From positions 3,658,001-3,722,000 of the forward strand of contig JAQFVV010000007.1 of assembly GCA_028023455.1 (NCBI GenBank): a stretch of DNA of 64,000 nucleotides, read 5' to 3'. The DNA is from Epiperipatus broadwayi (lineage: Eukaryota > Animalia > Onychophora). The translations under genes were made by a program, and so were the position numbers. The notes under the pieces are model-generated. The model saw only the letters and a list, made by a program, of their open reading frames with translations. It was not told where the DNA came from and did not search any database. Every line of letters begins with the position of its first letter. The stretch's first letter is position 1. This document shows, one piece after another, positions 1,290 through 44,020 of the stretch.

Positions 1290-4200
1290 TATTAAAAAAA
1301 ATTAAATTTCTCTCATGACCATGGTTTCATCTATTCACAAATAAATCTTGTGAAATCCAACTACAAACAGACAATTTATATATACACTAAACAGAAATAT
1401 TTGCACATAATTCACTTCAAAAACCACACACTTTAATATCAAAAGATGTTTTTATGAGATTGATGGCCTCAAATTCAAAAAGATTTATTGTCAGAGTTTC
1501 TTTAACTTTGCTGTTTGTTTGTTTGTTTTTTCATAAAAGGCCTGTATTCAGTTCATGAGTATACAATACTAAGTTAAGATACCTATTTTTAATTCTATTC
1601 TTATGAACTTTAATTCTTCCATTGAGATTTATTTTACTTTTACCTATATAAACTTCAAGGAATCTTATAAACTGTGCCAGGAATAGACTTTATTAATCAA
1701 CTGTTTTGAAGTATTTAATAAATTTAAATCAAGACCTTTCTACCAAGCAGCTTTCATACCACCTAATAAATGAATGTTTTTATAAACCAATCTATAAACT
1801 GATGACTTAAATGATTAAAAAATAAATTCTATTTTCACTAACAATTAAATTTTAATTAATATCAGATATAAAATATTTTTATTAAATATAATATTCATTA
1901 ATAAATTCATGATTATAATCCAATTCAATATAATCAGAAGCAAATTGACTCCTTTAAATACAAGCATTCTTTTCAAAATTAAGGCTTATATTCTTATAAC
2001 AAATGTTTAATAAAGAAAGCTTATGAGTAAAAGTTTTGATAACTGTCAGGTCTTATCATTTCATAAATTTTTATGTTTAATAAAATGATTACAAAATAAA
2101 ATATTATCAAACTTATTAACACTTAAATCCAAAAATTTAACAAACCAAATGTACCTCCCTCAATAGTAAAATTAATATTAGAATCAAATGCATTCAATCT
2201 ATCTGAATAACAAATAAACAATCAACAGATCTAATGAATAATTTTCAATATGCAGAAAATGATTAATACTCATCATCATCATCATCAAGCATTATCAATC
2301 CACGGCAGAATGAAGGTTCAATCCATCTCCGATTTTTAGCTTTTCTTCTCCACATAACCCCTGCACACTATCTTATTTCATCCATCCATCTCACATGTGG
2401 TTTCTTTCTGGATCTTTTACAATCTCTTGGAATCCAGTTTAAGATTTCAATTGTCCATCTATTTTCATTCCTTCTAGCAATATGTCAGCTCAATTCCACT
2501 TCAGTCTTTTAATTTTTTCAATGAGGTTAGTAACACCTGTTTGTTCTCTTACCCATATATAGGATTGCATTTTCAATCTCTTCTTACTTCCAATATGCAT
2601 TTCTCCGTATTTCTTTGAATGATCTGAAGACTCTGTATTGCTCTTCTATTATGTGTCCAAGTCTCAGATCCATAAGTAAGAAATAGTAAAACACATTTAT
2701 TAGACACCTTCCTTTTCAAACACATGGGCATATTTCCGTTTAGTATCAAGTTATTTCTATCGCCAAGTTTAATTCTATTATTAATTTCATCCATTATGTT
2801 TCCATCTGTATTAACAAATTGACTAAGGTATTTGTAGCTGTTAACTTCTTCTAACTCATCATAATCAATCTTTATTTTCATATTTTGAGAAAATCCATTA
2901 AACATTACTTTAGTCTTTTTAACATTTATCTTTTGTCTTACTTTCCTACTTTCATCTGATAACTCCTGCAACATTTCCTGCAGCTCTAAAGCATTATTTG
3001 CAAAAACAATTATATCATTGTAAAATCTAAATGACTTAAATAATCTCCATTTACTTTCACTCCTTTAGCTTCCCATTTTAATCCACAAAATACTTCTTGC
3101 AGCACTGCTGTAAAACGTTTTGGAGATATAGAGTCACCCTGTCTTACACCTTTTTCAATGTTGACTTTCCTAGTATCATTATGTAATCTAATTGTTGCTA
3201 TTGCATTTTTATAAATATTCTTTAAAATATGACAATATCCTGGAGCCATACCTCGATGACCCAATGCTTTAATCACTGAAGAAATGCTCATAGAATCAAA
3301 TGCCTTTTCATAATTTACAAATCCAAAGCATAATGGCAACTCATATTCATTTGCCCTTTCTACAACTTCTCTCAATAACTGGATATGATCTACTGTACTA
3401 AAATCACTTTTAAATCCAACTTGTTCTCTTGGTTGTGGAAATCCAATGTTCTCTGTAGACGAGTTGTAATTATCTTGGTAAAAACTTTGTATAAAACTGA
3501 TAAAAGGCTGATAGGTCTGTAATTTCTAATATCTTCTTTATCACCTTTTTTAAATATTAATATTAATACTGCATTCTTCCAATCATCTGGTATATCTTTA
3601 TCATTTAGACAATTGGTATATAACTTTGCTTAAAAAAATTCTATTTCTTCACCTGCTTCTTTTAATATATCAATTATAATTTCATCATTACCTGGAGCCT
3701 TTCCTTTCTTCATATATTTAATTGCATGTCTCACTTCTTCATTTAAAATTCTGGGCAATTACTGCTCTCTAAAAAAATAATATAGTCAGAGCACATTAAA
3801 AAAGAAATAACAATCAATAATCCTTTCCTCTTTAATCTTATAAAACACATTGTTGCACAAAGTACATTGAATTCTCTCAACAATAACAAATCATGAATAA
3901 CTTGTATCTTATCTGCAAAAAAAAAATATTAATTTCCCTAAAATAGAAAGAAATATATTAATACTATTTAATCTATCAGCAAATTAATAGATATTTTCAA
4001 TATTTACACTATCTAATAAATAAATGCCTCAAAAGAAGAACAGAGATAAAATTGAACCAAAACTAATATAATTTGTAAAAATCTTACAAGAAATTTTGAA
4101 ATTTTATTAACAATTCCCACCATCCACCCCCACCCAATAAAATCAAAAATATACCTAAAAAAAAAATTATCTTTACAAGACTTAAGATTAAAAAAAGTTT

Positions 4201-4440: not shown

Positions 4441-4699
4441 ATCAGAATAAAATTTTAAAATAGATGTTTAATAGAATTAAATTTTAATATAATTTGTTGA
4501 AATTTGATAATTTCTTCTAAATCACCATCAACGGAATTTAGGTAGGTGACCTTGTTTCTTAGATCTGGTCCACAAGGTGGCAGAAATTTGGTATATTTTG
4601 CTATTAAAATTTGAAAGACATTTTTAGAACTTAAATATGTTTTAAGTAATGCATGCAGTTTTTTTGTTGGTTTCAATTGAAAGCTTGATTTAAGTTAGA

Positions 4700-6460
4700 A
4701 TAAAAGAGTTGAAAATGATATAAGAAAGTATAACTGTGAACTAGCAAGGAAAGCTGTAGAAGAAAATAAAAGTCTTAAGAATGTAAAACAACATTTTGGT
4801 ATTGGTAGGAAATTTATATCTGCAATAAGAAAAAAAGATGGAATTATTACTAAAAGGAGAGATGACATCATGAAATTGGTAGATTTTTATCAAGAATTAT
4901 ATAGTAATAAAGAACAAGTACCTCCTATATCTATTACATCTTCCAAATTGCCCAGAATTTTAAATGAAGAAGTGAGACATGCAATTAAATGTATGAAGAA
5001 AGGAAAGGCTCCAGGTAATGATGGAATTATAATTGATATATTAAAAGAAGCAGGTGAAGAAATAGAAAAAATTTTAGCAAAGTTATATACCAAATGTCTA
5101 AATGATAAAGATGTACCGGATGATTGGAAGAATGCAGTAATAATATTAATATTTAAAAAAGGTGATAAAGAAGATATAAGAAATTACAGACCTATCAGCC
5201 TTTTATCAGTTTTATATAAAATTTTTACCAAGATAATTACTACTCGTCTACAGAAAACATTGGATTTCCACCAACAAAGAGAACAAGCCGGATTTAAAAG
5301 TGGTTTTAGTACAGTAGATCATATCCAGGTATTGAGAGAAGTTATAGAAAGGACAAATGAATATGAGTTGCCATTATGCTTAGGATTTGTAGATTATGAA
5401 AAGGCATTTGATTCTATAAACATTTCTTCAGTGATTAAAGCATTGGATCATCAAGGTATAGATCCAGGATATTGTCATATTTTAAAGAATATTTATAAAA
5501 ATGCAACAGCAACAATTAGATTATATAATGACAATGGGAAAGTCAACATTGAGAAAGGTGTAAGACAAGGTGACTCCATATCTCCAAAACTTTTTACAGC
5601 AGTGCTGCAAGAAGTATTTTGTGGATTAAAATGGGAAACTAAAGGAGTGAAAGTAAATGGTGATTATTTAAGTCATTTAGATTTTGCAGATGATGTAGTT
5701 GTTTTTGCAAATAATGCTTCAGATCTGCAGGAAATGTTGCAGGAATTATCAGATGAAAGTAGGAAAGTAGGACTAAAGATAAATGTTAAAAAGACTAAAG
5801 TAATGTTTAATCGATTTGCTCAAAATATGAAAATAAAGATTGGTTATGATGAATTAGAAGAAGTTAACAGTTACAAATACCTTGGTCAGATTATTAATAC
5901 AGATGGAAACATAATGGAGGAAATTAATCATAGAATTAAACTTGGTTGGAGTACTTTTGGTAGACATAACTTGATACTAAAAGGAAATATGCCTATGTGT
6001 TTGAAAAGGAAGGTTTTTAACAAATGTGTTTTACCAGTTCTTACTTATGGATCTGAGACTTGGACACTTAATAGAAGAGCAATTCAGAGACTTCAGACCA
6101 CTCAAAGAAGTATGGAGAGATGTATGTTGGGAGTAACAAGAAGAGATCGTAAATGCAATGTATGGGTAAGAGAACAAACAGGTGTTACTGACCTCATTGA
6201 AAAAATTAAAAGATTGAAGTGGAGTTTGGCTGGACATATTGTTAGAAGAGATGATAATAGATGGACAATTGAAATTTTTAACTGGATTCCAAGAGATTGT
6301 AAAAGACCCAGAAAGAGACCACATGTGAGATGGATGGATGAAATAAAAAAGTGTGCAGGGGTGATGTGGAGAAGAGAAGCTAAAGATCAGAGAAGATGGA
6401 TTAAACTTGGAGAGACCTTCATCCTGCAGTGGATTGATAATGGTTGATAATAATAAAAAA
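4700..6460 (+). mobile_element. 5'-truncated young RTE-clade LINE
   Basis: Homology to the longer copy (19505 onward) starts at ~4700. Ends in ctgcagtggattgataatggttgataataata, the terminus shared with the other copies. Confidence 0.95.
4870..6447 (+). CDS. RTE-type reverse transcriptase ORF (525 aa, uninterrupted, lacks the endonuclease domain)
   Basis: Motifs GKAPGNDG, YRPISLL, EQAGF, FVDYEKAFDS, GVRQGDSISPKLF, FADD, YKYLG and the RTE C-terminal LTYGSETW...AGHIVRR...RPRKRPHVRW. Confidence 0.93.
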   Translation: MKLVDFYQELYSNKEQVPPISITSSKLPRILNEEVRHAIKCMKKGKAPGNDGIIIDILKEAGEEIEKILAKLYTKCLNDKDVPDDWKNAVIILIFKKGDKEDIRNYRPISLLSVLYKIFTKIITTRLQKTLDFHQQREQAGFKSGFSTVDHIQVLREVIERTNEYELPLCLGFVDYEKAFDSINISSVIKALDHQGIDPGYCHILKNIYKNATATIRLYNDNGKVNIEKGVRQGDSISPKLFTAVLQEVFCGLKWETKGVKVNGDYLSHLDFADDVVVFANNASDLQEMLQELSDESRKVGLKINVKKTKVMFNRFAQNMKIKIGYDELEEVNSYKYLGQIINTDGNIMEEINHRIKLGWSTFGRHNLILKGNMPMCLKRKVFNKCVLPVLTYGSETWTLNRRAIQRLQTTQRSMERCMLGVTRRDRKCNVWVREQTGVTDLIEKIKRLKWSLAGHIVRRDDNRWTIEIFNWIPRDCKRPRKRPHVRWMDEIKKCAGVMWRREAKDQRRWIKLGETFILQWIDNG

Positions 6461-6678
6461 ATAAAATTAGTTTAATATAATTTTCTTATGCTTTTTTTTT
6501 AAAAAAAAAAGTTTTCTAAGAAAAAAATGTCAAACACTTCAACAGAAAGAATGTCTTCATATTTTAAGCTACTTAATGATTTATTTTCTACATATATAAT
6601 TACTTACACATACTAAATATGATATACATAAGAAATACGTATATTGACTTAAATGTAGAACAATCTACTGATATATAT

Positions 6679-7867
6679 TGTAACGGAAATGAAAATTAAA
6701 TTGAGAAATCATTTGTAACAGAAATATAAAAATATCATGATTATTAATTATTAAAATATGCATTTGTAATCTGTCATTTGTAACAGTATGAATAATATTG
6801 TAATGATGAATGATAAAAAGGCTGTTAAAAGACTGTTACCTTTATAACTGATTACAATCTATATATATTGATGAATGATAAAATGATAGTTGCTATAATT
6901 CAATAACTAAATATAACATTATAGCCCGTTTGCAACTATCCTAAACATTAATTCTGTCACGCTTATAATGAAATAAATAAATTATCTCATTTCTCAACAC
7001 ATAAAATAATAAAATGACAATTAAAACTGTCATCATTAAAGATTTAAAATATTTAGATATTGGGGAAGTCATTTCAACAATAAAACATACTGGCCATTGT
7101 CATCAAATAAAATAATATTAAATATAGCAACTGAATAAAATTACCCACTGTGAGATTCCTGGAGTGCATTATGCTTATCTCCAATACTAGGTTCTTTTAA
7201 CAAAGAATACTTCCTATTCTTCTTTCCAACCATATAAGACCATTCATGGTCACACGCACACACTGGTGCTATTCACGATAACTTATAAAACATATTATAT
7301 AAAGTTAATATTATGAAGTTAGAAAGAAGAATAGGAAGTATTCTTTGTTAAAAGAACCTAGTATTGGAGATAAGCATAATGCACTCCAGGAATCTCACAG
7401 TGGGTAATTTTATTCAGTTACTATATTTAATATTATTTTATTTGATGACAATGGCCAGTATGTTTTATTGTTCAAATGACTTCCCCAATATCTAAATATT
7501 TTAAATCTTTAATGATGACAGTTTTAATTGTCATTTTATTATTTTGTGTTGAGAAATGAGATTATTTATTTATTTCATTATAAGCGTGACAGAATTAATG
7601 TTTAGGATAGTTGCAAATGGGCTATAATGTTATATTTAGTTATTGAATTATAGCAACTATCATTTTATCATTCATCAATATATATAGATTGTAATCAGTT
7701 ATAAAGGTAACAGTCTTTTAACAGCCTTTTTATCATTCATCATTACAATATTATTCATACTGTTACAAATGACAGATTACAAATGCATATTTTAATAATT
7801 AATAATCATGATATTTTTATATTTCTGTTACAAATGGTTTCTCAATTTAATTTTCATTTCCATTACA
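6679..7867. repeat. Palindromic unit 1A (arms ~550 bp, loop 87 nt)
   Basis: 6679-7230 is the reverse complement of 7318-7867 with few substitutions. Ends TGTAA...TTACA. Confidence 0.95.
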
Positions 7868-7869
7868 AA

Positions 7870-7891
7870 TGGCGCCCCACGTTGGGCACCA
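7870..7891 (-). promoter_or_regulatory. tRNA-Lys(CUU) primer-binding site inside a 22-nt near-palindromic linker
   Basis: Minus strand reads TGGTGCCCAACGTGGGGC, a 17/18 match to the canonical Lys1,2 PBS TGGCGCCCAACGTGGGGC. Plus strand reads TGGCGCCCCACGTTGGGC (16/18). Confidence 0.9.
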
Positions 7892-7893
7892 TT

Positions 7894-10800
7894 TGTAACT
7901 GAAAGAAATTATTAATTATTAAAATATATTTATAATCTGTCATTTCTAACAGTATGAATAAATAAAGATGAACTGACAAAAGGTTGATAAAAGACTGTTA
8001 CTTTTATAACTGATTACAATCTATATATTAATGAGTGATAAAATGATAGTTGCTATAATTCAATAACTAAACACTAAACAGGATATATGATATGCTCCAG
8101 CGGTTCATCATTTGTAACCAAGTAAAATTAAATAATAAATGAATTCACTGTGTTAGCTAAAATACAATTTATAATTAAATAAGGATGACGCTAACATATA
8201 AATAAGAATATATGCATATCATGCTCTATTTGGGTGTCTATTTTTAATTAATTAAATATAACATGATAGCCCATTTGCAACTATCCTAAACATTAATTCT
8301 GTTACGCTAATAATGAAATAAATAAATTATCTCATTTCTCCATATAAAATAACAACAATGAAAATTAAAACTATTATCATTAAAGATTTAGAATATTTAG
8401 ATATTGGGGAAGTCATTTGAACAATAAAACATACTGGCCATTGTCATCAAATAAAAGAATATTAAATACAGCAACTGAATAAAATTACCCACTGTGAGAT
8501 CCCTGGAGTGTATTTTGCTTATCTCCAATACTAGGTTCTTTTAACCAAGAATCCTTCTCATTCCTCTTTTTATGTATATACGACCATTCACGGTCACACG
8601 CACACACTGGTGCTATTTATAACAATGTATAAAATTATCATATAAACTTAATATCATTAAGTTGGAAAGGGATTAAATCACTCTTTATTCAGTTTAGCTA
8701 AGTACATATGTTTTCCCATGAGTGCCACTAGATTGTTTTAAATCTAGATAAATCTGTTTAGAGTGTACTGAGTTCAAACTCATTCGGTACATTTTTATTA
8801 CACATGACTTGGATGACTAATGAAAAAAATAAAAATGACATTCTTATATTTTATTCATGTCAATAAAATCATAAAATCCCCATATTACAAAATTTATATA
8901 GATCAAGACTCTTATAGACATTGCTAGCTCATTTTTCGTATATTGATGAACAGACAAGTATAATCTTATTAATGGCTTCTAAACAAGCATCGTGAAGACC
9001 ATTATTGATATTGATGGCCATTTAACTAGATTATTTATCACAATATAAAGGTAATAATGATGATGATAATAATGATGATGATGATGATATCACATTAATA
9101 ATGATAATAATAGTGATGATGATACCAGCCATAGCTTTATACTGAACTCACAACAATAAATTTATCTTTATAAACTTATAGGCATTTTTTAAAAATCATC
9201 CCTTGTCAAAATGGGATTTAATTATTACATTCACTAGCATTTATATAAGTTTATGTTTATTTACTAAAATACTTTGATAGTTAAAACTAGGATTTAATAA
9301 TACTAGTGATGATGACTGATCATCATGGATCTCTATGCATGATATTCAACTTTCTACAAATCCTTATTTAATAAATCATTAATAAATTATAATCATTAAA
9401 TCTAATGTTTAACATAATTAATATATTTAGTAAATAAGGATTTGTAGAAAGTTGAATATCATGCATAGAGTCCGTGATGATCAGTCATCATCACTAGTAT
9501 TATTAAATCCTAGTTTTAACTATCAAAGTATTTTAATAAATAAACATAAACTTATATAAATGCTAGTGAATGTAATAATTAAATCCCTTTTTGACAAGGG
9601 ATGATTTTTAAAAAATGCCTATAAGTTTATAAAGATAAATTTATTGTTGTGAGTTCAGTATAAAGCTATGGCTGGTATCATCATCACTATTATTATCATT
9701 ATTAATGTAATATCATCATCATCATCATTATTATCATCATCATTATTACCTTTATATTGTGATAAATAATCTAGTTAAATGGCCATCAATATCAATAATG
9801 GTCTTCACGATGCTTGTTTAGAAGCCATTAATAAGATTATCCTTGTCTGTTCATCAATATACGAAAAATGAGCTAGCAATGTCTATAAGAGTCTTGATCT
9901 ATATAAATTTTGTGATATGGGGATCTTATGATTTTATTGACATGAGTAAAATATAAGAATGTCATTTTTATTTTTTTCATTAGTCATCCAAGTCATGTGT
10001 AATAAAAATGTACCAAATGAGTTTGAACTCAGTACACTCTAAACAGATTTATCTAGATTTAAAACAATCTAGTGGCGCTCGTGGGAAAACACATGTACTT
10101 AGCTAAACTGAATAAAGAGTGATTTAATCCCTTTCCAACTTAATGATATTAAGTTTATATGATAATTTTATACGTTGTTATAAATAGCACCAGTGTGTGC
10201 GTGTGACCGTGAATGGTCGTATATACATAAAAAGAGGAATGAGAAGGATTCTTGGTTAAAAGAACCTAGTATTGGAGATAAGCGAAATACACTCCAGGGA
10301 TCTCACAGTGGGTAATTTTATTCGGTTGCTATATTTAATATTCTTTTATTTGATGACAATGGCCAGTATGTTTTATTGTTCAAATGACTTTCCCAATATC
10401 TAAATATTCTAAATCTTTAATGATAATAGTTTTAATTTTCATTGTTGTTATTTTATATGGAGAAATGAGATAATTTATTTATTTCATTATTAGTGTAACA
10501 GAATTAATGTTTAGGATAGTTGCAAACGGGCTATAATGTTATATTTAATTAATTAAAAATAAGACACCCAAATAGAGCATGATATGCATATATTCTTATT
10601 TATATGTTAGCGTCATCCTTATTTAATTATAAATTGTATTTTAGCTAACACAGTGAATTCATTTATTATTTAATTTTACTTGGTTACAAATGATGAACCG
10701 CTGGAGCATATCATATATCCTGTTTAGTGTTTCGTTATTGAATTATAGCAACTATCATTTTATCACTCATCAATATGTAGATTGTAATCAGTTATAAAAA

Positions 10801-10907
10801 TAACAGTCTTTTATCATCCTTTTGTCAGTTCATCTTTATTTATTCATACTGTTACAAATGACAGATTATAAATATATTTTAATAATTAATAATTTCTTTC
10901 AGTTACA
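7894..10907. repeat. Palindromic unit 1B (arms 1483 bp each, loop 48 nt)
   Basis: 7894-9376 is the reverse complement of 9425-10907. About 5 differences in the outer ~170 bp that I compared. Ends TGTAAC...GTTACA. Confidence 0.97.
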
Positions 10908-11939
10908 ATATATATATATATAAGCTGTGTCGAATTGACCTAAGTAAAATCATATATATTAATTGAAGTTTGTTTATGATATATTTTTGGTAACTATTTT
11001 TAAAAAAATTCCAATCAAAAGGAAAAATGTCAGACACTTAGTTTAAGTCAATGATTTATCATACACATATATAATTATGTAAACATAATCATTACAATTA
11101 TTGCAGAAAAACAGGGTAAAAAATTTATTCTAGAATTGCATATTAACTTATTTGCAGAAATATCTGATATATATCTAAACTATAAGTATCAAGTCGATTT
11201 AAAGTACAATAGTTTTATTTTCTGTATCAATACTAGAATGTTAAAAATAAAGAGATTAATTTTTTTTTAATGTTGTTTTTATTTACCATGCACTTAATAT
11301 TGTTTCTTCAACCATAATTGGGATTTTTAGATTTAACTTAAAATAAAAGTATGGAAAGTCCAGAAATTAATTATGGAAGAACGAGATCTGGGTCAGCTAA
11401 TAAAAATGAAAGTTACCAGTGAGTGCATAACAATATTTTTTAATAAATTTATCTCAGGTAAATCATGTTATATATTATTTTTCCATAATTTTAAGAGGAA
11501 TGCAAAGAAGCTGTCTATAAAAATGTGATTTTAATATTTAATTCTCAAAATTTAGGATTTGTGAACAAATATAAAAATAAACATTTTAAATGTGTTAAAA
11601 ATCTTAATTTTATTTTTTTTTTAAGTAATGACTATATTTTCTCAGGTTCATTATATTCCTTGATATTTGCTCTTTCTAATATGTGTTATATTATTATTAA
11701 TGTGTTCAAACTGAAGATATTATACAAATTGTACCTCAAGCTTGTCTAAAATCCAATATAGTGGCCTTCAAAAGTCAAGAAGTAGCAATATTAATATGTA
11801 ATTGATTTTATTTCTACTATTGAATGTTGTAGAAATATTCTCGATCATAATAAATTGTCTTCACAGGTAATTTTGAATACGCAATTACTTGAGAGAATAA
11901 AATTTGTTTTTGCCCGAAAAAGATCTTAAAAAAAAAAGA

Positions 11940-28900: not shown

Positions 28901-30716
28901 TTTGTCCATATCTATATAGGTTAATGACTTTAAATTCCATGTATGAAACAGATGGTTCTGAATCTGCTGACAAGACTTCAAATTTATCAAATAAGATCAA
29001 ATCCAGATGACTTTATTATCAAATTTGGAAAATAAATTTGTTTGCAACCTCACAAGAAATTAACTTTTATGTCTTTGTCCTTCAGTTACAAATACTTGGT
29101 TGAATATCCAGAAATGGATCTTGATTTGAAATGAGTCTTCAATGGAGAGACTATATTGTGAATTATTGTCAAGTCCATTGTGCTTAAATGTTTCTGTACA
29201 TTTTTTGTAAGGCAAATTCTGTTTCTAATATCTGGTGAAGAATTATGTGAAAGAATTGGAAACCATTTCAAAGCATAGATTTGAGAGTAACAACAGTACT
29301 AGGTCTCATGAGAATATGTCAATATTTGATTGAACATACAAAAGTTTAATGTGGCACTTTTTTTTCAAAGAGGAATGCAGTATTCACCAATAAAATATAC
29401 TAGATCTAAATAGTGTCTGCAAACTTTCCAAGATTATTTCTACAATTATTTAAAATCTAATTTTAGATGAATAAAGAAAATGAATTGGGCAATGATCCAA
29501 GGATTATTCTAAATAATATGGGGAAGTTTTGTGTTCCAATTTATTTTTGCAGAAGAGTGTAGATTTTCAATCTTGACAAATTCAGAGAATTTTCTATTTA
29601 TGGAAAGTATTTCTTTTAAGAAGTCTGCTACATCCATTTACAATTCTTTAAAATTATTAGAATGATGTGTGCAAATAATAAATGTAATAAAAAATAATGT
29701 AAGTAAACAGATGAAAAGTTGATCTGCTAATAGAATTTAAAGCAATTAAAATGCTTCTGTAATTATTGTCGTAGTAATGCATGATTAGAATGTGCTAATG
29801 GATTAGAAAACTATTAAAATATTCTGAAGAACATTGTATTATGCCATTGGCATATTTCTTTAAATAGCACTAGAGATAAGCAAACTACAATTATCATACC
29901 TATATAATTAGCACTAATATGAAATAATAGTAAATTAAAGAGACATTGATATTACTAATGGAAAAGTAATATACTATTCCATATCAGGTGTACTCCAAAA
30001 AATGTCAAAATATAATATCTTGAAATTTATGAGGCCTATCAGTATAAAATCAATGCTCAATATTTAAGCAAGATGGTGCTGCTGTTGCAGAGAAATCCAT
30101 TCTGTATGTAATAAATAGATTGCAGAGTCATGTATAGGTCATCCTGACTTTTATTACTTATGTTAAGTCCTTCAGCAAACCTATGATACTTAAGCCATGT
30201 AAATATAGATAAAATGTATTAATTTATCTTTAACATAGGATAAAATATTTATGTATTCCCATTTAACTTATATTACTTTTGTATATTATACGTATGCTAA
30301 TCTAATACAATCAGTGCCTTATCATGTATTTTGTTAAGAGTATTTAATTAACATGACTTTTGGAAATTAGTTAAGACTGTGGATATTAATTAGAGAAGTT
30401 AAGGCAAATGTGTTTAACCTTCCAATTAGATATAGCACAAAGAAATGTCATCAGCATAGATAAATTTTCTGCATTCCAGATCTAGAAGATCATTGATTAA
30501 TATATTAAATACAAAGAAAAGATGATTCTTACAGTAAACTGTTCAATAGAATTTTGTATTTTCTATGACTATTATTAGTCATTGAATTTTTCTATTGGAA
30601 ACAATTTTGTGAAGAAAATTAATGGTTTTCCTGCACTTTAAGGTTTTAAAAACTTTTAGATCACTTTTCTAAACAGAAACATAGACCAATAAAGATAACA
30701 GCTGTTTTTAAGTTAC

Positions 30717-32075
30717 TGTAATGCTACAGGGAAATATGGGGTCATACCTTGGGTGATGGTCACCAGTATATGAACATCAACAGTCCTAAATTGGTTAGAC
30801 ATTTGTAACTCTATAGAAAATTGGAGTTTAAACCATGAGTAATCTGAGAGAATTGTATTTTTATCCTCAAGTTAAAAAAAATCTCAAAAGGGATGAGCAT
30901 AATAGATTATTCTGAAAGATCAGCACAGCTACTATAAGTTTACCAGCACTACCCATAAGAATAAGAACTATTCAAAAGAAGTAATCATTCATCATCATGA
31001 ATGATTAACAATCAAAAATAAAACAATCAAACTTGTAACTGGATTTGAAATGGGTCTTCTGTAGACCAGGCTAACTATTGAGCATTTCCCAGCTTTGGCA
31101 ATTATTTAAACCATAGTTTGGATGCACAAACTTAAGTACTAATCCATAAGAATACAACCAAAATAAATAATGGGATATTAAAACCTCATTTTCAATGCTC
31201 TGGTCACTTAGTACCATTAATGTACTGGCCAACTATAAACTTAATTTCTAATAAAGACCAAACTAAATAAAATGTAGTGCATGGACTTTGAAGAATATCC
31301 TATTTGTGCCTACCCAGAAATCATCATCATTATAATTATCTGGATGCCCATACACTAAATATAAACCCCCTATATATATCCAGCCATTATATATGAATCT
31401 ATCTCAGAAGAACACAAGCTCTATTACTTTTAGGTGACTAAGAGATGATGCAAAACAATTTTTAACAATTGAAATACAAGTTTATTAACAAAAATAAAAA
31501 TGATATTAAGGTCTCTAGAATATGGCTCTACAATTAGAAATTAAGTTTATAGTTGAGCAGTACATTAATGGTACTAAGTGTCCTGAACATTGATGATGAT
31601 CAGCAGGTTTTAATATTCCAGCATTATTATTTTTTGGTTATATTCTTATAGATTAGTGCTTAAGTTTGTGCATCCAAACTATGGTTTAAATAATTGCCCA
31701 AGCTGGAAAAAGTTCAATAGTTACCTTGGTCTACAGATCTATTTCAAATCCAGTCACAAAATTGACTGTTGATTTATTTTTAATTTCTAATCATTCATGT
31801 TGATGAATGGTTATTTCTTTTTGAATATCTATACTTTTGGGTAGTGCTGGTGAACTTATAGTTAGCTGCGCCAATCTCTCAGAGTGATCTATTATGCTCA
31901 TTCCTTTTGAGAGTTTTTTAAACTGAGGATAAAAATACAATTCCTCAGATCCCTTATGATTTAAACCCCAATTTTCTGTATAGATATAAATGGCTAACCA
32001 ATTTAGGGTAGTTGATATTCACATACTGGTGACCATCACCTGAAATACGACCTAGTATTTCCCTGTAGCATTACA
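30717..32075. repeat. Palindromic unit 2A (arms ~540 bp, loop ~280 nt)
   Basis: 30717-31252 is the inverse of 31533-32075, roughly 80% identical by eye. The terminal 20 nt tgtaatgctacagggaaata match exactly. Confidence 0.92.
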
Positions 32076-32077
32076 AT

Positions 32078-32099
32078 TGATGCCCCACATTAGGCACCA
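32078..32099 (-). promoter_or_regulatory. Decayed tRNA-Lys PBS linker
   Basis: Same 22-nt length as 7870-7891 and 18/22 identical to it. All differences are transitions, two of them at CpG. Confidence 0.8.
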
Positions 32100-32101
32100 A
32101 T

Positions 32102-32857
32102 TGTAATGGAATGGGGACATCAAGGTGGTGATAGTTTTAGTGAACTTGGGGTGATGGCAAAGCATTATCTCTCAAGTAAATTAAATTTAAAATGAAAAAT
32201 CAAATTAATTATTAAAGAAATCTTTAAAACCATAAAATATATAAGAATTTTATATATTATAAAAGAGCATGAGAACATGAAATCTCTCAGACAGATCATC
32301 CAGTTACTCCTTAGACTAATTGTAAATATAATTATACATCACTCAGCATTATCAATAAGTAATGGTAAGTATATATAATCAATTTAATGAGCCATCTTGA
32401 TTTTCTTTATGAATGAGCAAAACTGTGGATGGCTCATTAAATTGGTGGTTCATTCACCCATCTACCTGGTAGATCTTTCCAGTAGTCACACACTCATCTC
32501 AAAGATTAAGCCATGCATGTTATAGTACTTGCCTTTCTTTACGAATGAGCGAAACTACAGATGGCTCATTAAATTGATTACTTATACTTAATTTTTACTT
32601 ATTGATAATGCTGGGTGATGTATAATTATACCTACAATTGCTCTAAGGAATAACTAGCTGATCTGTCTGAAAGATTTCATGTTCTAAAGCTCTTTTGTAA
32701 TATAAAAAATTCTTATATATTTTGTGATTTTAAACATTACTTTAATAATTAATTTGATATTTCATTTTAAATTTAATTTACTTGGGAGTGATGATGATTT
32801 CCCATCACCCTAGGTTCACTAAAACTATCACCATCCTGATACCCCCAGCCCATTACA
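32102..32857. repeat. Palindromic unit 2B (arms ~297 bp, loop ~160 nt)
   Basis: 32102-32398 is the inverse of 32559-32857. Ends TGTAATGG...CCATTACA. Confidence 0.92.
32463..32574 (+). pseudogene. 18S rRNA 5'-end fragment (nt 1 to ~110), with a second partial copy at 32402-32445
   Basis: tacctggtagatctttccagtagtc...tctcaaagattaagccatgcatgt...gcgaaact...atggctcattaaat matches the conserved eukaryotic 18S 5' end. Confidence 0.9.
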
Positions 32858-33550
32858 TTATGTTAAAACCTTTTTTATTTTTAAGTTATTAAAGATAAAA
32901 TTTGTTCACAGTAGCTTTTTCCTGTCATATATCCTGCCTTTTCTAAACATATATTTGTAAAAGTTTTAGTAATATGATTTTTTCAAACAGTTCTAGGGAA
33001 AATGTAAGAATGATATAGTTTTGCTTTTATGCAAAATTTTTAGAATAGTTCCTATATGAATAATATTTTTCCAAACACACTTGGTTCTAAAAGTATGCTT
33101 TTTATTCCTGAGGATTTTTCTGATTTAAGACATTTGAGAACAAGTTCTTAACAGATTGCTATTAGAGGAAAAGAAGCTTGCAGTTCCACACTGATGAAGA
33201 TTTTTTTATCAATCAATATTGAGTTAGAATTCAGATATATGAGACTGAAAGCCTCATTAGTGATGCCAATAGTAGTCTTGTTTTTTTTTTCTAACTAAAG
33301 TGACTAAGCTTTTCAGCTAGATCTTGTAAAGTTCTTGTTTTTTATAATTCCATTTTTCTTTTCTAGCATCACATACTGATTTAATAAGTTTGTCAGCAAT
33401 TTTTTGATCTTTGATGACAAATATTGGCTACAAAGATTATTTTAGATTATTTTCAACCTGGAATGTATTTTTTATATATATACTTGAAGAATGGTCTCTT
33501 TGGCTATTGTTGTTATGAGTATATTAAACCTTTTATATATAAAAAGAACT

Positions 33551-43900: not shown

Positions 43901-44020
43901 TGCTAAGCGTTAGTGGTCGAGAGGTAAGCACAGCTGCCTTAAAAGCAGTTGTCTTGGGTTAGCTGGTTCGCTAAGCGGGTTCATTTCTCGTCCAACGCTA
44001 TGACACATGAGAAAAAAAAA
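43901..44020 (+). mobile_element. tRNA-Gly(TCC)-derived retrocopy or SINE with A-tail and 15-bp TSD
   Basis: gcgttagtggt..agaggtaagcacagctgccttaaaagcagttg...ccaacgc aligns with eukaryotic tRNA-Gly(TCC). The anticodon now reads TAA and the T arm has a ~21-nt insertion. aaatcattaagtatt occurs at 43886-43900 and 44018-44032. Confidence 0.8.

Follow-up and report, generated by a model that had tools for sequence, protein, structure and literature searches.

Kilobase fold-backs joined by a tRNA-Lys primer-binding-site palindrome in Epiperipatus broadwayi, probable integrated products of aberrant reverse transcription

The analysed window, a stretch of 64,000 nucleotides from the onychophoran Epiperipatus broadwayi (assembly GCA_028023455.1, contig JAQFVV010000007.1, positions 3,658,001 to 3,722,000 of the forward strand), contains two composite structures, each made of two fold-backs joined via a primer-binding site (PBS). 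Composite 1 extends from 6679 to 10907 and consists of unit 1A (6679-7867) and unit 1B (7894-10907). All four unit ends follow the pattern TGTAAC...GTTACA, with starts at 6679 and 7894 and ends at 7867 and 10907. The arms are 98.2% identical in both units, over 557 nt in 1A and 1476 nt in 1B. The spacer between the units is 26 bp long in total and is formed by AA (7868-7869), the 22-mer TGGCGCCCCACGTTGGGCACCA (7870-7891) and TT (7892-7893); it has no purine tract (PPT). This segment (7868-7893) contains two oppositely oriented 18-nt tRNA-Lys(CUU) PBS copies, which share 14 nt; the one on the minus strand is near-native, with one transition. On the outside, composite 1 is bordered by ATAT at 6675-6678 and again at 10908-10911, a candidate 4-bp target-site duplication (TSD) that lies within a (TA)n run and by itself carries little information. 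No open reading frame of at least 150 aa was found inside either composite. A preliminary description of this DNA had placed the two fold-backs with TGTAA...TTACA ends, the AA/TT linker and the ATAT flanks at these same positions. It had also noted that a PPT, an internal domain and an ORF are missing, and had read the TG...CA ends, the spacer before the PBS and the 4-bp duplication as hallmarks of Ty3/Gypsy-type LTR retroelements. The structure holds as described. Its ends, its PBS and spacer and its putative TSD, which lies inside (TA)n, are those of an LTR-type reverse transcriptase (RT) and integrase.

In unit 1A, the outer arm and loop (6679-7326, plus strand) would correspond to a minus-polarity cDNA starting at the U5 terminus TGTAAC. 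This segment is collinear with its repeat family up to 7326: family copies align at 94-98% to window 7150-7326 and end at 7326, in the 1A outer arm that was also aligned to family copy L026. The sequence CTTTCCAAC (7225-7233, plus strand) forms the upstream half of a 9-nt inverted microhomology at which 1A would have snapped back, and its partner GTTAGAAAG (7318-7326) reads GTTGGAAAG in L026. The inner arm (7327-7867, plus strand) is the reverse complement of the outer arm and ends in GTTACA, the U5 end of the LTR in sense orientation. In unit 1B, the inner arm (7894-9370) has its sense LTR end on the minus strand, where it abuts the PBS. The apex junction ATAA (9371-9374) separates it from the outer arm and loop (9375-10907), which, read on the minus strand, would be a minus-polarity cDNA from the U5 terminus at 10907. 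The 1B outer arm is family-collinear over ~1.53 kb and is ~56 nt longer than the inner arm.

Composite 2 (30717-32857) repeats this architecture with different sequence, which confirms the second occurrence reported in the preliminary description. It is laid out as 30717-32075, AT, TGATGCCCCACATTAGGCACCA (32078-32099), AT and 32102-32857. Unit 2A (30717-32075, plus strand) has the ends TGTAATGC...GCATTACA and arm segments that are 83-92% complementary. The 22-nt PBS palindrome (32078-32099) is decayed and differs from the canonical junction by transitions only. The arms of unit 2B (32102-32857, minus strand) are 87.5% identical, and 2B has no detectable similarity to 2A. To judge by its sequence, composite 2 is older than composite 1. 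The apex of 2B holds the 5' end of 18S rRNA at 32463-32590 on the plus strand (RF01960, 72.5 bits, E 1.5e-19, model position 1 to ~105), as matched in a local E-value search, an Rfam search of the whole window at the gathering threshold returning only a tRNA. This piece is contiguous with the 2B outer arm and starts exactly at nucleotide 1, which fits run-off on a mature RNA template; additional 18S fragments lie at 32366-32444 within 2B. The putative TSD of composite 2, TTAC/TTAT, is alike at three of four positions, and the repeats that flank the composite stop at 30715 and resume at 32858, in agreement with the element boundaries. Among the scored matches, no contig had both flanks adjacent, as in an empty paralogous site. 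No open frame of a LINE RT interrupted by composite 2 was seen in the flanks, and such an interruption is not confirmed.

The PBS 18-mer, preceded by AA, is perfectly complementary to the 3' terminus of tRNA-Lys(CUU), including CCA. The 3' part of this tRNA (44 nt, CTT anticodon) is present in 12 exact genome copies and in 59 at no more than three mismatches. The same 18-mer is given as the tRNA-Lys1,2 PBS in PMC8775094, the identity that had been proposed for the linker from the outset. The PBS-like pattern was observed twice in the window, against 0.00-0.02 occurrences by chance. A genome search located the 22-mer junction at 588 sites, against 3 for a control. This 22-mer equals the 18-nt PBS followed by GCCA, as expected from two PBS tails with a 14-nt overlap, and 58 of the 1123 exact 18-mer PBS sites (5%) continue with GCCA. 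In 46 of the 49 sites listed, the 22-mer is not a perfect palindrome: one strand still reads as a native PBS (A..G or C..T). The last 14 nt of a PBS tail are nearly self-complementary (12 bp and two mismatches), and the predicted PBS DNA homodimer has positions 5-18 and both 3' ends paired, at -15 kcal/mol. This energy is unexceptional, 17% of composition-matched shuffles being equally stable, so that the energy of the self-dimer alone is no evidence.

Each arm of composite 1 corresponds to the U5-proximal 0.56 or 1.48 kb of an abundant TG..CA unit of ~4.3 kb that is flanked by 4-bp TSDs. The ~4.3-kb unit begins with TGTAAC and ends in ...ACA; one of its copies (L029) has a clean TSD, AGCT/AGCT. 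More than 1700 candidate copies of it are collinear with the 1B inner arm (arm b, 7894-9370). These copies are non-palindromic and extend beyond the apexes of both 1A and 1B. Each palindromic LTR-like unit is a hairpin copy of one section of an ordinary LTR-like unit of ~4.3 kb that is not itself a palindrome. This unit was found solely as solo copies (four of four examined), and a full-length autonomous parent was not found. When the LTR end together with the PBS was used as query, only three of the 40 best matches, besides the copy in the window, extended into the PBS, and at least one of these three (C12630) is an exact palindromic PBS site.

The relation between the arms reveals who copied whom. 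Units 1A and 1B are ~90.5% identical to each other, against 98.2% between the arms within each. At diagnostic sites, 37 support the grouping of each arm with its partner in the same unit (a with a', b with b'), versus 0 and 1 for the alternative groupings. Therefore, each unit was copied from itself, and 1A and 1B derive from different templates. In addition, the equal arm identity of the two units points to the same age and to one event. The 1A apex, and perhaps the 1B apex too, is internal to the LTR-like unit rather than at a demonstrated RNA 5' end, which counts against a fold-back at the end of the template in these units.

We read 23 of the 588 genome sites around the 22-mer, together with 26 metagenome contigs. 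The other loci include two-, three- and four-armed as well as concatenated variants, from several unrelated LTR families. Every unit examined runs from U5 terminus to U5 terminus and is followed by the spacer and the PBS. The outer ends of units coincide exactly with an LTR terminus ...CA in nine of nine assessable cases, often adjoining (TA)n. In three three-armed loci (L030, L034 and L037), the apex of the fold-back maps to the same template position at which the single arm terminates on its outer side, consistent with a shared strong stop at the RNA 5' end; at this position, L034 contains a terminal hairpin of 7 bp. It is the outer arm that carries the loop and stays family-collinear in 1A, 1B, L030 and L037, as expected if synthesis ran from the outer U5 end to the central PBS; the direction of copying is outer arm first. 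The order at L033 is PPT, LTR, PBS palindrome and inverted LTR. At L004, one fold-back lies between two PBS palindromes, as would follow if copying a tRNA-primed strand restores the PBS tail. Beyond this genome, 26 unrelated metagenome contigs (41-56% GC) contain the exact 22-mer, many of them with inverted LTR-end flanks, and the PBS-joined structure is also found in other eukaryotes.

Each composite is probably one dead-on-arrival product that was integrated after aberrant reverse transcription by an LTR retrotransposon primed by tRNA-Lys(CUU). A tRNA-primed minus-strand cDNA would have the U5 terminus TT-TGTAAC as its 5' end. After copying U5 and sequence upstream of it, this cDNA would fold at a short inverted repeat, located internally or at the 5' end of its RNA template. 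It would then use itself as template and extend through U5, AA and 18 nt of the tRNA, yielding a hairpin with a 3' PBS tail. Two PBS-tailed molecules of one particle could anneal tail to tail and each be extended over the other; alternatively, the PBS tail could prime on the PBS of a second genomic RNA. The resulting linear duplex would read TT, palindrome A, AA, the 22-nt PBS palindrome, TT, palindrome B and AA. Both of its outer ends would be ordinary U5 ends, which integrase would trim and insert with a 4-bp TSD. The order of these events, the dimerisation, the co-packaging of two templates and the role of integrase are what we infer. Three marks of a self-primed cDNA hairpin are present in the DNA: the arms start at the U5/primer junction, a 3' PBS copy follows, and the outer arm bears the loop.

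Self-priming of minus-strand strong-stop DNA is described as established in vitro for HIV-1 in PMC4668388, which cites Guo et al. 1997; it depends on TAR and is suppressed by nucleocapsid. There, as in the reading proposed here, a tRNA-primed cDNA folds at a hairpin located at the RNA 5' end or close to it and copies itself, which leaves a hairpin with R-U5 arms. Unlike the HIV-1 hairpins, the present products are integrated in the germ line, number in the hundreds, have a copied PBS tail and are paired via this tail; in addition, their fold-backs sometimes lie far from the RNA 5' end or follow a jump onto 18S rRNA. Copy-back defective genomes of RNA viruses are similarly by-products of a polymerase that switches to its own nascent strand, and aberrant 2-LTR circle junctions that contain a PBS likewise keep primer-derived sequence at the junction. 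However, the polymerases and the molecules differ in both, and 2-LTR circle junctions join LTRs in direct orientation, whereas linear U5-U5 molecules inserted by integrase are at issue here.

Known element types match composite 1 in part. It does not have the two direct LTRs, internal domain and PPT of a canonical LTR element. With TRIMs and LARDs it shares TG..CA ends, a tRNA PBS right after the LTR, a putative short TSD, the absence of coding sequence and a dependence on RT and integrase in trans. However, TRIMs and LARDs occur as families of similar copies and contain a PPT and an internal domain alongside two direct LTRs, whereas the present units are fold-backs with neither PPT nor internal domain, and composite 1 is single-copy, without dispersed copies of identical structure and boundaries. 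Foldback (FB) transposons also display a kilobase-scale fold-back and no ORF, but they are moved by a transposase and have no tRNA PBS, LTR termini or other retroelement signals; composite 1 carries a central PBS and LTR termini, and its arms are partial copies of an LTR-like unit. Finally, DIRS elements resemble it in having inverted repeats of retroelement origin. They have neither a tRNA PBS nor a TSD, encode a tyrosine recombinase and contain an internal complementary region, none of which fits composite 1, where there is no ORF and where a tRNA PBS and a TSD-like duplication are present.

The main alternative, which we regard as unlikely, is a true non-autonomous retroelement class in which a transcript of the hairpin dimer is packaged and converted back into DNA without a PPT, hairpin self-priming replacing plus-strand priming, and in which copies multiply. 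The recurrence of the same architecture in several unrelated LTR families speaks for it, and a transcript that begins within an inner sense arm would have a 5' R-U5-PBS and a sense LTR end at 3'. Moreover, locus C1389 has the same apex as 1B, at 88% identity, and loci L002 and L035 have an apex in common. These shared apexes fit limited propagation, but they are also what repeated snap-back at hairpins or strong stops would be expected to leave. Against such a class, the 1A apex junction, which sits at the 9-nt inverted microhomology, occurs once in the 5.6-Gb assembly, and the genome has no second copy of the whole of composite 1. Even the nearest same-family loci that carry a PBS palindrome match composite 1 at just 79-87% identity, against 98% between its own arms. 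The halves stem from different templates, and in composite 2 from unrelated families; arm number varies from two to four and more across loci. Therefore, independent one-off by-products fit better than a replicating lineage. The preliminary description had proposed a class of non-autonomous element mobilised in trans by an LTR-type RT and integrase. The origin through such an RT and integrase is supported, whereas propagation of the composites as a class is not, given the unique apex, the differing templates, the distant relatives and the variable arm number.

It is also quite improbable that the hairpin dimers form a heritable, PPT-independent retroelement class that is occasionally re-transcribed, or that they are hairpin-RNA loci kept by the host for small-RNA silencing of the parent LTR families.

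A chromosomal rearrangement would require no reverse transcription at all: a break or stalled fork in an integrated LTR element would lead to fold-back inversion at the PBS palindrome and within the LTR. Short inverted repeats are known seeds of such inversions, microhomologies are present at apexes, and intramolecular pairing of the terminal GGGC and GCCC of the PBS would yield the identical 22-mer. However, the arms across the PBS differ by ~9.5% versus 1.8% within units, and the two sides of composite 2 are unrelated, so that the two sides were never copies of each other. Further, the outer boundaries are exact LTR termini followed by a candidate TSD, the 18S rRNA at the 2B apex begins at nucleotide 1 without upstream rDNA spacer, the apexes match single-arm ends in three loci, and no internal element sequence follows the PBS. 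This makes fold-back inversion very unlikely.

Composite 1 is not an assembly artefact. Short-read unitigs from four runs of one sample, possibly the source of the assembly itself, match 7811-7896, the junction of the inner arm with the PBS palindrome, without differences, spanning no fold-back; the left boundary is weakly supported by unitigs, which reach 23 nt inside the element. The arm differences in 1A and 1B comprise 27 transitions, 9 transversions and 5 gap columns. An empty site or other haplotype was not found for composite 1, whose flanks are both repeats, and the locus is present once. Although palindromic chimeras are a known type of long-read error, chimeric fold-back reads merged into false palindromes are an exceedingly improbable source of the composites, given that transitions predominate with very few indels, that the arms of composite 2 have decayed to ~80-88% identity, that unitigs reproduce 7811-7896 exactly, and that the junction recurs at 588 genome sites and in 26 independent metagenome contigs. 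Both fold-back inversion and artefact were rejected.

Full-text literature searches returned no earlier description of PBS-joined inverted LTR dimers. If the composites are indeed snap-back cDNA dimers, this genome would be a fossil record of reverse-transcription errors hitherto known mainly from in vitro work: nascent cDNA priming itself, template jumps onto abundant cellular RNA and incorrect annealing of the PBS copy. Many retroviruses and retrotransposons rely on the tRNA-Lys1,2 PBS, which would then have an inherent liability, namely that its copy can pair with itself. In this genome, roughly one in 20 intact PBS sites would be scarred in this way, with the same scar in unrelated eukaryotic DNA. 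The apex positions would make it possible to locate, from sequence alone, where the RNAs of old LTR families begin. Finally, perfect kilobase palindromes of this type may give rise to double-stranded RNA and to genome instability.

Element 1, the younger of two composites in the window, proved on direct sequence check to be laid out as the preliminary description had it: two fold-backs, a primer-binding-site (PBS) linker between them, and ATAT on either side (6675-6678 and 10908-10911). Unit 1A begins with TGTAAC at 6679 and ends with GTTACA at 7867, and unit 1B runs between the same motifs from 7894 to 10907. The spacers AA (7868-7869) and TT (7892-7893) enclose the 22-mer TGGCGCCCCACGTTGGGCACCA (7870-7891). 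After alignment, the arms are 98.2% identical in both fold-backs, over 557 nt in 1A and 1476 nt in 1B. The second composite announced at 30717-32857 (element 2, units 2A and 2B) is also present, and is older. No ORF of at least 150 aa was found within either element. The window has about 26% G+C. Two inverted copies of an abundant LINE-like repeat (2326-3760 and 4946-6393; arms 89-95% complementary, ~1.2 kb apart) lie to the left; the right copy retains a 525-aa ORF (4870-6447) with an RVT_1 domain, and element 1 sits ~230 bp past its A-rich 3' end. A tRNA-Leu(TAA) call at 43906-44000 scores 31.1 bits, the Rfam tRNA gathering score being 29; its 95 nt are more than a tRNA usually has, perhaps owing to an intron or to its being a tRNA-derived repeat.

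The linker had been taken for a tRNA-Lys1,2 PBS, and this identification holds. TGGCGCCCAACGTGGGGC is exactly complementary to the last 15 nt of tRNA-Lys(CTT) followed by CCA, and PMC8775094 lists this 18-mer as the tRNA-Lys1,2 PBS. When up to 3 mismatches are allowed, the 44-nt 3' part of this tRNA matches the genome at 59 places, and at 12 of these the match is perfect. Within the window, the transition-tolerant PBS pattern occurs twice, as compared to 0.00-0.02 expected by chance, the second occurrence being the centre of element 2. The 22-mer consists of the 18-nt PBS followed by GCCA, and is what two PBS copies in opposite orientation yield when they overlap by 14 nt. Modelled with DNA parameters, a homodimer of the 18-mer is held by 12 bp over positions 5-18 of both strands, interrupted by two single mismatches and with each 3' end paired; its energy, -15.0 kcal/mol, is not unusual (17% of shuffles are equally stable), and the modelled geometry predicts exactly the 22-nt length observed. 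One strand carries the native PBS (A..G, or C..T on the other) at 46 of the 49 listed sites, and 3 are perfect palindromes, as would be expected had replication resolved a two-mismatch heteroduplex.

The assembly searched comprises 5.6 Gb in 18,588 contigs, some nearly duplicate, so that site counts may be somewhat inflated. A search for the 22-mer, allowing transitions and up to one mismatch, found it at 588 sites versus 3 for the reversed control, and GCCA follows 58 of 1123 exact 18-nt PBS sites (5.2%), forming the palindromic junction. A few of these 1123 lie in tRNA-like contexts with CCA. At C13:3811806-3811852 and C16:12617268-12617314, exact PBS matches overlap tRNA-like matches in which the tRNA-Lys(CUU) 3' part precedes an encoded CCA; these are either retro-copied tRNAs or elements whose tRNA-complementary PBS is very long.

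The four arms of element 1 (a and a' of 1A, b and b' of 1B) share 502 alignment columns. Over these, a and a' are 98.2% identical, b and b' 97.6%, and any 1A arm with any 1B arm 90.0-90.8%. At 37 sites, a and a' together differ from b and b', versus 0 and 1 for the other two groupings. This sequence comparison shows that either unit was copied from itself, 1A and 1B deriving from different templates, and the equal arm divergence in the two units fits a single event.

A 251-nt probe over the 1A apex retrieved more than 1700 candidate copies, all confined to 7150-7326 and in a single orientation, and the window holds the sole occurrence in the assembly of the palindromic apex junction. Nine probe-found copies are collinear with the entire arm b (7894-9370, ~1.5 kb) and continue past the 1B apex. 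Four, fetched at 10 kb, have ~4.3 kb in common, with a TGTAAC start adjoining the target, an ...ACA end, and 4-bp duplications (among them AGCT/AGCT in L029 and ATAT in other copies); none of the four has a tRNA-Lys PBS match. In the copy checked, L026, the unit contains neither internal direct or inverted repeats nor an ORF of at least 100 aa. The unit's ...GTTACA end is the one abutting a PBS (U5 end). It follows that the palindromic LTR-like units 1A and 1B are hairpins copied from the part next to U5, 0.56 kb in 1A and 1.48 kb in 1B, of an ordinary LTR-like unit that is itself not palindromic. At the family's U5 end, TGTAAC(A/G)G... modules stand singly or in tandem runs of up to three (6679-6713 and 7830-7869; 5' ends of L017-L025), with an inner GTTACA-AA-TGG and the real terminus ~25 nt later, as though the LTR had taken up earlier LTR-end/PBS starts. 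This family flanks both sides of the PBS palindrome at two or more other loci (C40:2269071, C6487:775888) and one side at several more; they are 79-87% identical to element 1 and seem to record separate, older events rather than copying of element 1.

The outer arm of 1A is family-collinear to 7326, where the strand becomes its own reverse complement. This switch falls at a 9-nt inverted microhomology (CTTTCCAAC, 7225-7233; GTTAGAAAG, 7318-7326), the second copy of which reads GTTGGAAAG in L026. The outer arm of 1B, followed on the minus strand from 10907, is family-collinear to 9375, ~56 nt beyond the inner arm (end 9370), in an AT-rich, imperfectly self-complementary apex region. Thus the outer arm was made first in 1A as in 1B, as expected if synthesis ran from the outer U5 end, the predicted tRNA primer position, to the central PBS. 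One other locus, C1389, has a 1B-type apex (88% identical), in keeping with a recurrent stop that may mark where RNA of the ~4.3-kb family has its 5' end.

Locus reading covered 23 sites of the assembly. L001, L003, L012, L013, L031 and L033 are two-armed palindromes centred on the PBS, with arms up to 3.3 kb. L006, L015, L030, L034 and L037 are three-armed (single arm, PBS, fold-back), elements 1 and 2 are four-armed, L004 is a concatemer with two PBS palindromes 250 bp apart and one fold-back between them, and a few loci lack clear symmetry. Flanks are at least 70% complementary within 30 nt of the junction at 9 of 21 loci, versus 0% for mismatched locus pairs. All nine assessable unit outer ends lie at the exact LTR terminus ...CA (eight U5, one U3), and many adjoin (TA)n; single-arm outer ends show no CA and no target-site duplication (TSD). 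In L030, L034 and L037, the fold-back apex coincides with the template position of the single arm's outer end, which we take for a common strong stop marking the RNA 5' end. Their loops hold 9-69 nt of sense sequence, with a 7-bp terminal hairpin at the L034 apex. Left of the L037 single arm (~4490-4505), the inferred RNA 5' end directly adjoins TGGTGCC, which corresponds to the opening 7 nt of a decayed PBS, either by chance or, possibly, through another template jump.

L033 reads PPT, LTR, PBS palindrome, inverted LTR and (TA)n target, with GAAGGGGGAGAAAG and non-coding internal sequence ahead of its left arm. Its right arm is 99% identical to the outermost inverted fragment and 93-95% to the middle LTR, a difference that again implies two templates. 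The non-coding stretch ahead of the PPT (726-1304) is made up of ~48-nt tandem repeats, resulting in a spurious 192-aa ORF. In L004 (1501-1772; C3:26308041-26308312), the PBS palindromes enclose a 228-bp fold-back, and one outer flank repeats the other in inverse orientation (x' P y y' P x); its family has a 15-19-nt spacer between LTR end and PBS. The L013 junction (~1501-1560; C18:11150475) is imprecise: the 22-mer, 16 nt of filler, a second, partial inverted PBS GGGCGCCA and the inverted LTR. L001 (C2:28170467, ±361 nt) is a two-armed dimer whose outer ends share one template position and show neither TG/CA nor a TSD; it resembles a strong-stop dimer that was captured with no help from integrase.

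In element 2, no similarity between 2A and 2B was detectable. The 2B apex matches eukaryotic SSU rRNA from model position 1 (72.5 bits, E 1.5e-19), with high confidence to position ~105 (32463-32590), contiguous with the outer arm; more 18S pieces, in both orientations, directly precede it. Because the copy starts exactly at mature rRNA nucleotide 1, it suggests that reverse transcription jumped to an RNA template and ran off its end, and not that rDNA was rearranged.

We consider it probable that the composites arose from tRNA-Lys-primed snap-back cDNAs, joined at their PBS tails and inserted by integrase. A tRNA-Lys-primed minus-strand cDNA would fold back and copy itself together with 18 nt of its primer. 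The PBS tail would then pair with a second PBS tail, or prime on the PBS of a second RNA, and mutual extension would give a linear duplex ending on both sides in an ordinary U5 terminus, which integrase would insert. Two- and three-armed forms would result where hairpins mix with molecules of the plus-strand strong-stop kind, and copying a still tRNA-primed strand would regenerate the PBS tail, making concatemers possible.

That the hairpin dimers are instead a propagating class of element, as first proposed, is unlikely: C1389 and 1B have a common apex, as do L002 and L035, but the composite is unique and each composite had two templates. Fold-back inversion of the chromosome, which the microhomologies at the apexes might suggest, is very improbable. 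The site groupings in 1A and 1B, with the dissimilarity of 2A and 2B, indicate that PBS-flanking sequences were never copies of one another, which argues that two molecules were joined and against folding of a single molecule or chromosome at the PBS; the 18S start at nucleotide 1, the LTR-terminus outer ends, the coinciding apexes of L030, L034 and L037 and the L033 templates also oppose inversion. Short unitigs from four runs of one sample, possibly the assembly's own source, match 7811-7896 and 7832-7896 without differences and cross the left boundary (6594-6701, just 23 nt inside element 1). None of them spans a fold-back, but an assembly artefact has a negligible chance given that arm differences in element 1 are mainly transitions (27, with 9 transversions and 5 gap columns), that an older composite exists, and that the junction recurs elsewhere in the genome and in metagenome contigs of other organisms.

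The machinery and individual error types are already known; PMC4668388 gives strong-stop DNA self-priming as established in vitro. Full-text literature searches turned up neither PBS-joined inverted LTR dimers nor integrated snap-back LTR cDNAs, and within that scope the integrated, recurrent architecture joined by a PBS palindrome appears undescribed. Among JGI metagenome sequences, 26 contigs (41-56% G+C) contain the exact 22-mer; one has a eukaryotic Plus-3-domain gene, and many have inverted LTR-end flanks or fold-backs. Flank complementarity reaches 99% over ±140 nt (L051), 90% over ±500 nt (L048) and 91% over ±270 nt (L040), and L038 and L044 have a one-sided fold-back. Hence, the scar is not peculiar to the Epiperipatus broadwayi genome.
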